In this document: positions 6,104 through 62,611 of the stretch, piece by piece
How the letters are laid out: every line of letters starts with the position of its first letter
Position numbering within the stretch: the first letter of the stretch is position 1
DNA from: Selaginella moellendorffii
Lineage: Eukaryota > Plantae > Lycopodiophyta
DNA: 64,000 bases
NCBI RefSeq assembly: GCF_000143415.4
Contig: NW_003314265.1
Span: 2,088,777-2,152,776, forward strand
Direction: 5' to 3'
Program-made: the position numbers and the translations under genes
Notes under the pieces: generated by a model
Database searches by the model: none
The model's input: only the letters and a program-made list of their open reading frames with translations
What the model was told of the DNA's origin: nothing

Positions 6104-7574
6104 ATGGACGGCGGCGTGAGCTCGAGCAACAAGTCGTCACAGATCATGGCTGGATGGTTCTCGGAGATCAACCGAATGTGGCCAGGTGATGGCACAAACT
6201 TGATTAATGAATTGGCATCCTGTCCTCTCCAGAAAAAAAAAAAGAAAAAGAGTGATGCGCATTGGCTTCTCTTATCTAACCACGAGCGAGGGCATTTTTT
6301 ATTCTCGCAGGTGAAGCGCTGTCACTGCAAGTGGACAAGATCGTTTTTCAGGGCAAGTCCGAGTTCCAGGATGTTCTCGTGTTTGAGGTTTCAAGTAAAG
6401 AGAGATTCTCCCCCTTTTATGATTTCTTTTCTTGTGGCAGTCGAGATCTCATGGGCGGGTCCTAGTTCTGGACGGCGTCATCCAGCTATCGGAGAGAGAC
6501 GAATGCTCGTATCAGGAGATGATCACACACCTCCCCTTGTGCTCCATATCAAACCCCACAAAGGTAATTTTGTCTGGAAAAGATCGGACAAGCCTGTTTC
6601 CCGATCGAGCTTAAATCTAGGTGCTGGTCGTGGGAGGTGGCGATGGCGGAGTTTTGAGGGAGCTCGCGAGGTACCCATCAATCGAGCGGATTGATCTCTG
6701 CGAGCTTGACAAGATGGTGATTGATGTAAGCGTGTTAGCCTAAAAAAACCTTGTGTAATCTTTCCCACCATTTTAAACAGGTGGCCAAGGAGTATTTTCC
6801 CGGGCTGGCCTGTGGATTCGACAACCCTGTGGTCACTCTTCACATTGGTGACGGTCGGTTTTGATGGCTACACTTTGTACCAATTGTTGAAAAAGCTCCT
6901 TTCCAGGGGTCTCGTTCGTGAAGAACGCTCCACCGGAAACTTACGATGCGATCCTGATCGATTCAACAGATCCAGATGGTATTGTTCTAGAAGTTTACCT
7001 TGTTTCCAAACACACACACACACTCTACAGGACCGGCGAAAGAACTGTTCGAGGTTCCTTTCTATCAGGCAGTGGCACGGGCACTGCGACCCCGGGGTGT
7101 TATGTGTGCCTTGTCCGAGAGCCCCTGGCTAAACATCCAGACCGTGAAGAACCACCTAGACGTGTGCCGTCAAGTGTTCAAGGGGAGCGTGAGATTCGCA
7201 TGGACGACGGTGCCAACATACCCGAGGTTCGTTGCACAACACACACTACAAGCTAAAGATCGTTTACTTCAGTGGAGTCATCGGCTTGGTACTGTGCTCC
7301 AAGGAAGCGATCGATTTCGAAAAGCCCGTTGTCTCGGACAAGGCGCTGGGGACGATGCAGCTGGGAGGAGCGCGCTTGAAGCACCCGCTCAAGTACTACA
7401 ACTCGGCTGTAAGTCTCGTTCGATTCACGTAATTTTCTAGCGTTTTTATCCCGTTGGCCGATCCACCAGTTGCACGCGAGCGCGCTGTGCTTGCCCGAGT
7501 TTGCGAAGAACGTCCTCACCGTCAAGGAGAGGGAAGACGGTGGTGGAAGTCGTGTGGTGGCGAATGACCACTAA
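6104..7574 (+). CDS. SPDS: Spermidine synthase-like aminopropyltransferase, 9 exons (approx. 6104-6185, 6311-6387, 6441-6563, 6621-6725, 6781-6853, 6907-6978, 7031-7226, 7273-7409, 7470-7574)
   Basis: The spliced translation gives [94 protein letters not shown]. Introns are GT-AG and the frame stays open. Confidence 0.92.
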
Positions 7575-8109
7575 AGGTACCCAGGTATGGAAAAAGAGTT
7601 ATCAAAGTTTGGAAGACAGGCCTATAAACATGTAACTGGGATTGATCCATGCGCTCAATCAAGCATGGACCACTTCGTCCCATGTCACCAGCAACAGAAT
7701 TCACCATTACTGTACTGGGTCTGGAATTTATAAGTTTGTATTTGGCGGCAGATGGAAAACCTTGAGCTAAACTTTCTTACTTGCTGATTATTTGTAAATC
7801 AGATGCCGCACTAAATCCATTCCTGTGGTTGTGATGCCATGGAAAGTGAGCAAATGTTGAAAGTGTTCCTATGCTTTGAAAACTATGACTTTGATTCATA
7901 ATCCAAGGCGTTACACGTCAAAAATAAATCCAAGAAACCTTTGTGTAATGGGAGATGGGGGCATTGGGACGAAGTGGCAGTTATATGTTTCTAGTGCTAT
8001 CTTCAAAGCTTAAAGCCTCGAGCTAGAACTTTCCAAACACGGCCCTTTCAGTGCTTACACCACTCTTGTCTTCCTTCATCTTCTTGATTGATTTGCTGGG
8101 TCGCGAGAC

Positions 8110-8280
8110 TTAGCCGAGTTAACGTTGTAGACTTGAGCGGCCGCTTCAAGCACGCTCCTCCCAGCCCCATCGCCCCGAGCGCCTTGTCCGGGCTCTTCGG
8201 AACTTCCATATGCGAATCTCACGCCCCCTGGAAGTTGCAAAGCTAGAGAATGCAGGGCTGCAGCTAGAACGATCGACGCA
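8110..8280 (-). pseudogene. Chimeric relic: BAHD exon-1 piece joined to spermidine-synthase exon 7/8 pieces
   Basis: GGAAGTTGCAAAGCTAGAGAATGCAGGGCTGC matches the reverse complement of BAHD 13171-13202. GCGAATCTCACGCCCCCTGGA and CTTCAAGCACGCTCCTCCCAGC match the reverse complement of SPDS 7177-7199 and 7358-7382. Confidence 0.75.
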
Positions 8281-60400: not shown

Positions 60401-61259
60401 AGCTGAAGACGTACATTGACAATGGTCCAACCTCAATGAAAACAACGATCATGAAAACTCCAAATTCAAAGGAATGTGCATAGCGTGAATTTACAAGGAA
60501 AGACGCCTGAATCAACTCATATATTGGTTTGTCTAACTAGGATGTTTGCTGTTCAACGAAATGGAAGTCGAAGTTTAAGAGGTTCGTGAGCTGTTTGTTC
60601 TAACCAAAATGTTTGTTCAAAGAACTGGACAACGCCAGGAGAGGCTTCAACCTTCCAGGTCCATGTTCTCTTTAGTTTTCTTTATGGTTTCTCTAACTTC
60701 CTTTTGTTTTTGCAACACCATGAGATTGCGACGGTGCCACAGAACAACGTTCCAGGGCCAGCTAACGATGGGTAAATGGAAGTTTACGCTCTGGCAGTGG
60801 GAAAACGAGACGATCTACACAAAGCACTCTGTGGTTTCCTTGAAAAGAAATGAATACATTTACAAAGTTGCAAACATTTGTCAAGTAGTTATGTCTCTTC
60901 AGGCACTAGCTTAGCTGTTGTTTCCGTGGGAGTGGCCATTGCCAGCGGGACGGGAGCCGGTTTGTGAGCTTTATTCACGAAGTTCACGGATGAATCATCT
61001 AATCAATCCTTACTCCCGAGATGCATGGGAAACGGAAGGAAAATTCGCCCAAGAGCCAAGAACAGTGGACGAACTGGAGATAAACAAAGAGAGGAACTCC
61101 TGGTTTGAGAATACAAGGTTAAAACTATTTTGCTTCTTGGTGTTAAGGTTTGTGGGCTAGCTTAGGCCCTGACTAACAAGTTGCTTTCTTATAATGTGAA
61201 AGTTAGACTTCTCACAAGCCCAAAGCCACAAGGCGCGATTCTTTGTTTGAGTAAGAGCT

Positions 61260-62611
61260 TGCAAACTTTGAGTATCATAAGTGTCCCAAAGGGTGCTTGC
61301 TGTCCGCTAGGCAGTGGTGCGTTCCCTGGTCTCTCAAGTATCACAGTGTCCAGGCCTGGCAACAAAAGCAATGATACATTAGCAACACATCTCTCGCTTT
61401 TTTTTCCCAGACATTACCAGCGTCTTTAGCAGCAACAGCCCGTGGCGAAGTAATCTGAGAAGGCTCATCGGCACCCACCGAAAGTGCCTCTCGTTTGTTT
61501 CTGAAAAGGAATGAGATGTGAGGAGCAAATATAATGAACCAAGTGCGGAAAATCTCACCCTGCAGTATCGAAGTAGCCCAAAGTTTGTGTTCCCAAAGAT
61601 CAACCGCTGTGCTTCTCGGCTCCCACTCGAGTAAATATAGGCCTAAAAGGAACAAGGTGACGACATCAACATCGTGCTTTGGCAACTCCTATCAGACCTT
61701 CTACTCAGCACAAGGAGAGTGGAACGTCCTGAAAGACTTGGCCTTTGTGTTCACCGTTTTTGTATCCTGTTCTCCAAATATATCCCTGTGATGCAAAGGA
61801 CCAAGAAACGTTGATTCAAAACAAGACCAGACCTGGAATTATTTGAGGGCTGTAACTTTGCGATCAGCAGCAGTCATGCGAGAACGTTACGCTCTGACTT
61901 CGTCCTTATCACTTGGGAGAATAAGCTGCGTTTGCACGTTTCCCTCCTTCGTGTCTTTAAGAACCTGCTTGACATAACACGAGATTTCTGCTGCCACCAA
62001 AACCAATGAAATCTTGGCTGTTGCCTGAGAAGGTCTAGATCACCTTGAGTCTCCTTCGAATCGTAAGTGGCTGAGAGGTGTTTTCCCTCATTGTCATGTG
62101 CATAGGGAAACAAACGTCCATACGGGAATCGTGGTGCACACGAGAAAAACATTTGATAAAAGCCCTCATTAATAGACAGCATTTCTTGCGGGATAGTTTT
62201 TCCTTGGAGCTGCAAGGCTGAGTTTCTTCACTGGTCCATGCAAGGGGTCTGTATGGTCGAGGCCAAACTGGCGAAGCTTAAGTGCGGCATCAAAAAGATA
62301 ATGGTAGCATTCTGCCTTCTTCGCAAAAGATTAAGAGTCAAGCTGGAAAAAATACTATCACCTGAGTTTTAGCACAGAACCACGAGTCACCCCAAACGTG
62401 ATCCCATGGTTTCTCACTAACGCTGCCGTCGTTCATGGATAAGCGGCACTCTTCCAGCAAAACACGAATAAGAAAGACAACAGTGAGAAACGAACGAGCT
62501 TTTACTCACGGCTGCTGCTAAAGAATCCGTGAGCTCATATTCATATGCAGAGTTTTCAATGATCGGGACTACGAGTTAACCATGCCCTTCGATTCCTTTG
62601 ATCATCTCCAT
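61260..62611 (-). pseudogene. DEP1: DEP1 relic, copy 3
   Basis: The same DEP1 motifs on the minus strand, degenerate. Confidence 0.85.

Follow-up and report, generated by a model that had tools for sequence, protein, structure and literature searches.

We analyzed a window of 64,000 nucleotides from the lycophyte Selaginella moellendorffii, located on scaffold GL377569.1 (4.14 Mb; window position = record position − 2,088,776), in which genes of three enzyme families lie close together. Protein matches of 92–100% to S. moellendorffii agree with the species assignment. The window contains one intact aminopropyltransferase gene, two intact BAHD acyltransferase genes (BAHD A and C), one BAHD pseudogene (BAHD B), three relics of DEP1 and short remnants of the 3′ end of the aminopropyltransferase gene. 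A first-pass annotation made from the letters alone had proposed that these families together may mark a specialised polyamine-conjugate locus. The second haplotype, represented by scaffold GL377714.1 (291 kb), is collinear with the window at 90–97% DNA identity and was used for comparison. The spliced products P0015, P0013, and P0023 are database proteins whose equality to the window exons was checked by exon walks, and the duplication architecture was read from a self-BLAST of the window. The principal features are listed below, with the E values of the spermine synthase (SPMS) relics computed against the window alone (ORF, open reading frame).

6104–7574, plus strand: SmSPMS, intact (XP_002964137, SELMODRAFT_227474, P0023, 322 aa), with nine exons at 6104–6185, 6311–6387, 6441–6563, 6621–6725, 6781–6853, 6907–6978, 7031–7226, 7273–7408, and 7470–7574
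8132–8209, minus strand: relic of the SPMS exon-8 region (tblastn, P0023 residues 258–283, 65% identity, E 6e-4)
10254–10634, minus strand: degenerate relic of SPMS exons 7–9 with stops (tblastn, P0023 residues 185–300, E 1e-5)
13118–14552, plus strand: BAHD A, intact, with exons 13118–13543 and 13599–14552 and a 55-bp phase-0 intron, equal to P0015 exactly (EFJ34472)
~17585–19139, plus strand: pseudogene copy 1 of DEP1, an MtnB–MtnC fusion (NCBIfam, ORFs, and a gene call with a faint Aldolase_II match)
22604–22934, pieces on both strands: relic of SPMS 3′ exons (tblastn, E 6e-5 and 0.01)
26288–27585, plus strand: BAHD B, pseudogene (blastn and tblastn against copy A)
46216–44749, minus strand: DEP1 pseudogene copy 2, within the inverted duplicate adjoining BAHD C (ORFs, human E-1 match)
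49602–51024, minus strand: BAHD C, intact, with exons 51024–50599 and 50555–49602 and a 43-bp intron, equal to P0013 exactly (SELMODRAFT_405848)
62704–61192, minus strand: DEP1 pseudogene copy 3, within the directly repeated block 56663–63724 (ORFs, alignment)

The first-pass inventory was confirmed in these analyses, with each element found at the given position or close to it. One intact aminopropyltransferase with relics at 8.1, 10.2, and 22.6 kb was recovered by the exon walk and tblastn, two intact BAHD genes and one BAHD pseudogene were confirmed by the exact matches to P0015 and P0013 and by the lesions of copy B, and the three DEP1 relics, present as pseudogenes only, were supported by NCBIfam matches, ORFs, and copy-specific indels. 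The self-BLAST likewise agreed with its picture of co-duplication and birth-and-death.

The nine exons of SmSPMS reproduced P0023 exactly in the exon walk, with GT/GC–AG introns of 46–125 bp, indicating that the gene is intact. The protein carries the Pfam domains Spermine_synt_N and Spermine_synth, and the decarboxylated S-adenosylmethionine and catalytic motifs (GGGDGG, D-S-x-D-P) are conserved, with DSTDPDGPA in the alignment to AtSPDS1/2. Its identity to angiosperm spermidine synthases (SPDS) and the canonical SPDS of Selaginella (P0067/P0145, encoded on a different scaffold) was ~61–63%, and to the canonical SmSPDS alone 63%; it reads ALSES at the site where SPDS enzymes read TQAES. It matched P0143 (XP_002993169), the allele on the other haplotype, with 319 of 322 residues identical. 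XP_002993169 is a functionally validated spermine synthase, whose activity was first reported by Takahashi (2024) (PMC12803844; PMC13582744), and in Escherichia coli it gave approximately five-fold more spermine than spermidine and ~1000-fold more than thermospermine (PMC12803844). SPMS has been described as a neofunctionalised duplicate of SPDS with an ancient origin, dating back at least 440 million years (PMC12803844). Thus, the gene previously called SPDS-like is a polyamine enzyme as supposed, but the 319/322 identity to XP_002993169 makes it the known SmSPMS rather than a new SPDS-like gene. SmSPMS is predicted to make spermine from spermidine, as demonstrated for the 99%-identical allele. 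Identifiers of the locus genes were found in the literature only in the J Biol Chem 2025 paper (PMC12803844).

As judged from the alignments, the three SPMS relics are real but weak, short fragments of the 3′ end. Those at 10.2 and 22.6 kb are copies of each other (10212–10441 against 22838–22609, 97% in the self-BLAST). We also considered whether a DEP1 relic could be the remnant of an ancient SPDS–DEP1 segment. This was rejected because the canonical SPDS locus of S. moellendorffii (L005) has neither DEP1 nor BAHD neighbors. As a separate observation, the deposited S. moellendorffii cDNAs P0024 (BDZ85136) and P0147 (BDZ85135) show 17% divergence from the genome for SPMS but only 7% for SPDS, reflecting either a divergent plant accession or an SPMS that evolves much faster than SPDS.

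Both BAHD A and BAHD C matched the Pfam family Transferase (PF02458) with E values of 1e-44 to 1e-48, and both carry the HXXXD motif as HTLLD and the DFGWG motif as EFGWG. The two proteins differ at 15 of 459 residues, and the 19 synonymous and 16 non-synonymous differences between the genes correspond to a ratio of non-synonymous to synonymous substitution rates (dN/dS) of 0.25, indicating purifying selection on both since their duplication. Exon 1 of BAHD B is intact; exon 2 is frameshifted over part of its length, contains a stop, lacks 87 bp, and has a 62-bp inversion (27382–27443) that covers the DFGWG motif, and these lesions mark copy B as a pseudogene. The inverted 62 bp are 100% identical to copy A at 14349–14410, with flanks of ~90%, and may stem from a recent conversion or repair event or from an assembly artefact. 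The NCBI isoform models X1–X3, in which the first exon of BAHD A is connected with the second exon of pseudogene B in a 14.5-kb gene call (13118–27585), are probably chimeras predicted from two paralogues.

Four further BAHD genes or fragments, belonging to two other subfamilies, lie 9–18 kb upstream of the window start (L006, GL377569.1:2063896–2085766). They comprise two 488-aa proteins with Glu at the catalytic position, a 513-aa protein of the His type, and a 152-aa fragment annotated as ‘BAHDb8delta’. SmSPMS therefore sits inside a BAHD array of ~70 kb, which extends beyond the locus delimited by the first-pass annotation. On the other haplotype, the order of SPMS, the cytochrome c-like gene, and BAHD is identical.

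To characterize the BAHD type, BAHD A was compared with solved structures. The highest scores were obtained with HCT enzymes (coffee HCT 177 bits, AtHCT 163, and SmHCT 160), while the amine-type structures scored lower (AtSHT 142 bits, agmatine coumaroyltransferases 92–100, and AtSCT 68). In HCT, an arginine handle binds the shikimate carboxylate, and a Thr and a Trp belong to the acceptor site (PMC6203249). The arginine (AtHCT R356, SmHCT R372) aligned to a gap in BAHD A (HDI-G versus LVRG), and the Thr and Trp (AtHCT T369/W371, SmHCT T385/W387) were replaced by Tyr and Leu (GIYSVNLHSF versus GITS--WVRL). Assignment of BAHD A and C as HCT, in line with the NCBI name ‘shikimate O-hydroxycinnamoyltransferase’, was rejected, as the Arg handle, Thr, and Trp are all absent and the proteins fall into a separate clade. 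The NCBI labels ‘HCT’ and ‘rosmarinate synthase’ for these BAHDs are not supported by the residues found at these positions.

A HMMER scan of 1.84 billion representatives returned about a dozen sequences at or above 215 bits (34–57% identity, with one multidomain protein at 27%), followed by generic BAHDs at ~30%. In a maximum-likelihood tree of unnamed 50%-identity representatives, a clade of 15 that included BAHD A and C was set apart from the other 56 with 100% support in the Shimodaira–Hasegawa-like approximate likelihood ratio test (SH-aLRT). Ten representatives were then named, and all the named clade members came from lycophytes or ferns (Selaginella, Diphasiastrum, Phlegmariurus, and Adiantum). 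In this tree, whose placed tips do not include the characterised SHT, SDT, SCT, ACT, and PHT enzymes, BAHD A and C would belong to a lycophyte/fern clade outside the polyamine-type groups, and kinship with SHT, ACT, or PHT was not supported. The phylogeny proposed in the first-pass annotation as a check thus gave no support to such kinship, either in the structure scores or in the tree. Amine or amino-alcohol acceptors would nevertheless be compatible with the placement, leaving the BAHDs as possible candidates.

One clade member, WOJ51791.1 (‘acetyl transferase 1 [Phlegmariurus tetrastichus]’), showed 39% identity to the window BAHD and, from its name and species, is presumably PtACT-1, the enzyme that adds an O-acetyl group to a piperidine alcohol during the biosynthesis of Lycopodium alkaloids (Nett et al., Nature 2023, PMC10700139). 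The nearest characterised relative of BAHD A and C, and the sole characterised member of the clade, thus appears to be an O-acetyltransferase.

The residue at the catalytic position varies within this clade. BAHD A, BAHD C, and their paralogue P0022 (64–70% identical) have the canonical catalytic His (codon CAC; A 13599–13670, C 50555–50480), as do the basal members of the clade. These three His-type proteins are nested with 98–100% support in a subclade of Glu-bearing proteins, namely P0004, P0005, P0006, P0150, and P0009 from Adiantum, and the two 488-aa array neighbors have the Glu codon GAG at the catalytic position (L006 9046 and 14639). Under parsimony, the tree implies that His was first replaced by Glu and later restored. 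The approximately unbiased (AU) test rejected the Glu types as one clade excluding the His types at p 0.003, for a grouping defined after the tree had been seen.

Each DEP1 relic contains, in order and on one strand, the exons from the C-terminal half of MtnB (MEMIKG, LVVPIIEN) through the C-terminus of MtnC; the N-terminal part of MtnB was not found in the relics. The NCBIfam matches were to TIGR03328 (methylthioribulose-1-phosphate dehydratase) at positions 126–178 with an E value of 1.3e-8 and, twice, to TIGR01691 (acireductone synthase) at positions 82–166 with an E value of 3e-4. When the long ORFs of the relics were searched against solved structures, one gave a weak match to the N-terminal part of the human E-1 enzyme (E 0.07) and a second gave chance-level matches only. 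Copy 2 is 95.6% identical to copy 1 at aligned sites, and each copy has indels of its own. The relics contain stops and frameshifts, and the HAD motif DxExTT (DIEGTTTP) is replaced in every copy on both haplotypes, including the other haplotype, on which the first-pass annotation had suggested looking for an intact DEP1. By these lesions, all the DEP1 copies are pseudogenes on both haplotypes. With DEP1 non-functional in all copies, two working enzyme classes are left, SPMS and BAHD.

The self-BLAST resolved the region into the following duplicated units.

11924–21280, plus strand: unit A, containing an upstream region, BAHD A, an unknown ORF (15408–16020), DEP1 relic 1, and short repeats
21281–21661: assembly gap, situated within non-coding repeats and downstream of relic 1 of DEP1
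24.5–27.8 kb: unit B, a partial copy (self-BLAST)
40191–47178: 7-kb block, with a direct repeat at 56663–63724 of 86–94% identity (self-BLAST)
52145–42694, minus strand: unit C, the inverted counterpart of unit A (self-BLAST, collinear blocks, 80–94% identity)

The two copies of the 7-kb block flank BAHD C and a beta carbonic anhydrase gene. Because of this block copying, all the places where BAHD and DEP1 occur together, some of them with SPMS fragments as well, go back to one ancestral juxtaposition and amount to one association, not three. A sequence of ~250 bp within the span of the cytochrome c-like gene recurs upstream of each of the three BAHD copies (8638–8918, 12418–12661, 25603–25840, and 51405–51636) and lies at the edge of the duplicated block. 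The flanks of the assembly gap are collinear with both paralogous copies, in which the corresponding spacing is 372–397 bp versus 463 bp in the window; the gap therefore has no bearing on any of the genes described.

The block holding the third DEP1 relic was absent from the corresponding place on the other haplotype. Homology of the window to a Rad21/Rec8-like gene of the other haplotype (54500–56664 against L003 6471–4292) ends at 56664, where the direct repeat starts, and there is no gene call for Rad21 on the window haplotype. The block 56663–63724 thus represents a rearrangement confined to one haplotype or else a mosaic created by the assembly.

Several unrelated genes are interspersed among the members of the three families.

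8329–9702, plus strand: cytochrome c-like/DUF3082 gene, between SPMS and BAHD A (gene call, Cytochrome_CBB3 match)
31029–31935, plus strand: Di19 gene, between BAHD B and C (gene call and Pfam)
32302–32871, minus strand: plastid-type ribosomal L12 gene, between BAHD B and C (gene call and Pfam)
34205–35939, minus strand: leucine-rich repeat (LRR) protein gene, between BAHD B and C (gene call and Pfam)
from 37421, minus strand: BRO1 gene, after the LRR gene (gene call and Pfam)
53356–54511, minus strand: beta carbonic anhydrase (Pro_CA) gene, adjoining BAHD C (gene calls on both haplotypes)

When ten additional ORFs of the window were scanned with Pfam, the cytochrome c-like domain and a retrotransposon gag were the only matches. 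The gag-like ORF is located at 594–1262 on the minus strand, at the left edge of the window.

According to the above results, the adjacency of the three families is probably a product of local duplication history in a structurally unstable region, with SmSPMS lying in a lineage-specific BAHD array. The ancestral block would have consisted of a BAHD gene, the unknown ORF, and an already dead DEP1, and would have been copied by segmental duplication once in inverted orientation, once partially, and once as the 7-kb direct repeat, with pieces of the SPMS 3′ end scattered during these events. These events would have left two BAHDs that selection has maintained, a third that decayed, and the three pseudogenes of DEP1. 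BAHD A and C themselves are predicted to be acyl-CoA-dependent acyltransferases with a remodelled, non-HCT acceptor pocket. A gene cluster can be taken as a contiguous set of at least three non-homologous functional enzyme genes of one pathway; here we found SPMS and BAHD only, with unrelated genes between them. We infer that the adjacency is no evidence of a selected polyamine-conjugate pathway. A check of the text of a Selaginella expression-atlas preprint for the words ‘BAHD’, ‘polyamine’, and ‘gene cluster’, in which gene identifiers were not searched, found none of them.

Some observations weigh against the explanation by duplication. SPMS is embedded in the ~70-kb BAHD array, which has at least six intact BAHD genes, on both haplotypes; this is a priori unlikely for one given gene. 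It is also a suggestive coincidence that a copy of DEP1 lies next to the gene of a methylthioadenosine-producing enzyme. The carboxylate-binding Arg is absent from the BAHDs, and the substrate of what appears to be their nearest characterised relative is a cationic piperidine. In addition, S. moellendorffii contains caffeoylputrescine and coumaroylagmatine without homologues of the angiosperm amine acyltransferases (Weng and Noel, PMC3650682), and in the absence of such orthologues some divergent BAHD must make its hydroxycinnamoyl-amines. These points could be accommodated by a true cluster, in which SPMS would supply spermine (or spermidine/spermine flux), the BAHDs would N-acylate polyamines, and DEP1 would be what remains of a co-opted methylthioadenosine recycler. 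The position of SPMS within the array, seen on both haplotypes, the purifying selection on BAHD A and C, the loss of the Arg handle, which fits a non-acidic acceptor, and the lack of assigned enzymes for the hydroxycinnamoyl-amines (PMC3650682) all speak for it. We nevertheless consider a true cluster unlikely. The amine conjugates named in PMC3650682 are those of putrescine and agmatine, not spermine, the BAHDs appear related to SHT, SDT/SCT, and ACT at the general family level only, and their nearest characterised relative appears to be an O-acetyltransferase. Moreover, DEP1 is dead everywhere, leaving two functional enzyme classes, unrelated genes lie between the members, and block duplication makes the association count once. 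It is decidedly unlikely that the missing lycophyte amine N-acyltransferases arose by convergent evolution and correspond to the His-bearing BAHDs flanking SmSPMS, with a His that was perhaps regained, and that they form with SPMS the first polyamine-conjugate cluster outside seed plants. Of the original proposal of a specialised polyamine-conjugate locus, the part that stands is that SPMS is a polyamine enzyme; the dead DEP1, the single association, the interspersed genes, and a BAHD clade apparently outside the polyamine types stand against the rest, and the hypothesis is weakened, not refuted.

Two other explanations concern how the repeated pieces arose. The published assembly mixes two diverged haplotypes, and the block 56663–63724 with the third DEP1 relic might be a misplaced haplotype or paralogous segment. 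The block begins exactly where the Rad21-like homology to the other haplotype stops, parts of it are 96% identical to the other haplotype, to which copy 2 is 91% identical, and an N gap is present in the paralogous repeat. However, over its whole length the block is about as similar to the other haplotype (90.9%) as copy 2 is (90.1%), it differs from copy 2 by 6–14% and is therefore not a simple allele, and the remaining elements were found on both haplotype scaffolds, so that an artefact seems doubtful. Alternatively, transposon capture of the Pack-MULE or Helitron type could have spread the DEP1 and SPMS fragments, with similar pieces expected genome-wide. This would fit the many short repeats (~150–490 bp) around the relics and the retrotransposon gag at 594–1262, but it is highly improbable, as a DEP1 relic keeps ~70% of the gene and its exon–intron layout within blocks of 7–9 kb that include a complete BAHD gene. 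No terminal repeats were evident in the self-BLAST map, although no search was aimed at them.

Under the favored explanation of local duplication, the value of the locus is mainly corrective: a published SPMS has been identified, the NCBI names of the BAHDs are unsupported, and the DEP1 copies are pseudogenes. The locus is also a clear example of block duplication mimicking a multi-family cluster. If the linkage were functional, it would provide candidate enzymes for the hydroxycinnamoyl-amines of Selaginella, whose biosynthesis is unexplained because lycophytes have no orthologues of the angiosperm enzymes, and would extend polyamine-conjugate gene clustering to an early vascular plant. The BAHD clade of lycophytes and ferns, with its alternation of Glu and His at the catalytic position and its remodelled acceptor pocket, is a more promising subject.

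Several known systems resemble the genes of this locus in part. PtACT-1, presumably WOJ51791.1, belongs to the same well-supported lycophyte/fern clade as BAHD A and C, and in both the catalytic His is present and the HCT-type ‘SW’ Trp is absent; however, the identity is only 39%. To our knowledge, Selaginella is not known to make Lycopodium alkaloids. HCT enzymes, including SmHCT (PDB 6DD2), share the BAHD fold, the HXXXD motif, and DFGWG-like motifs with the window BAHDs and are the best-scoring solved structures, whereas BAHD A is ~30% identical to them and the true SmHCT is a different protein. With AtSHT (6LPV), AtSCT/SDT (6LPW), and HvACT (7CYS), the superfamily is shared and the scores are below those of HCT. 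AtSHT, in which Asp314 is essential for spermidine use, is, like the window BAHDs, an offshoot of HCT-like enzymes.

For SmSPMS, the counterpart is XP_002993169 (Li, Michael et al., J Biol Chem 2025, PMC12803844), which has the same length and the same neighbors; the published assay was performed with that allele, from which the window protein differs by three conservative substitutions. As in plant biosynthetic gene clusters, an array of tailoring enzymes lies at the SmSPMS locus beside a neofunctionalised paralogue of a primary enzyme. The locus differs from such clusters in having two working enzyme classes, interspersed genes, and, in SPMS, an ancient duplicate (PMC12803844) rather than a recent recruit.

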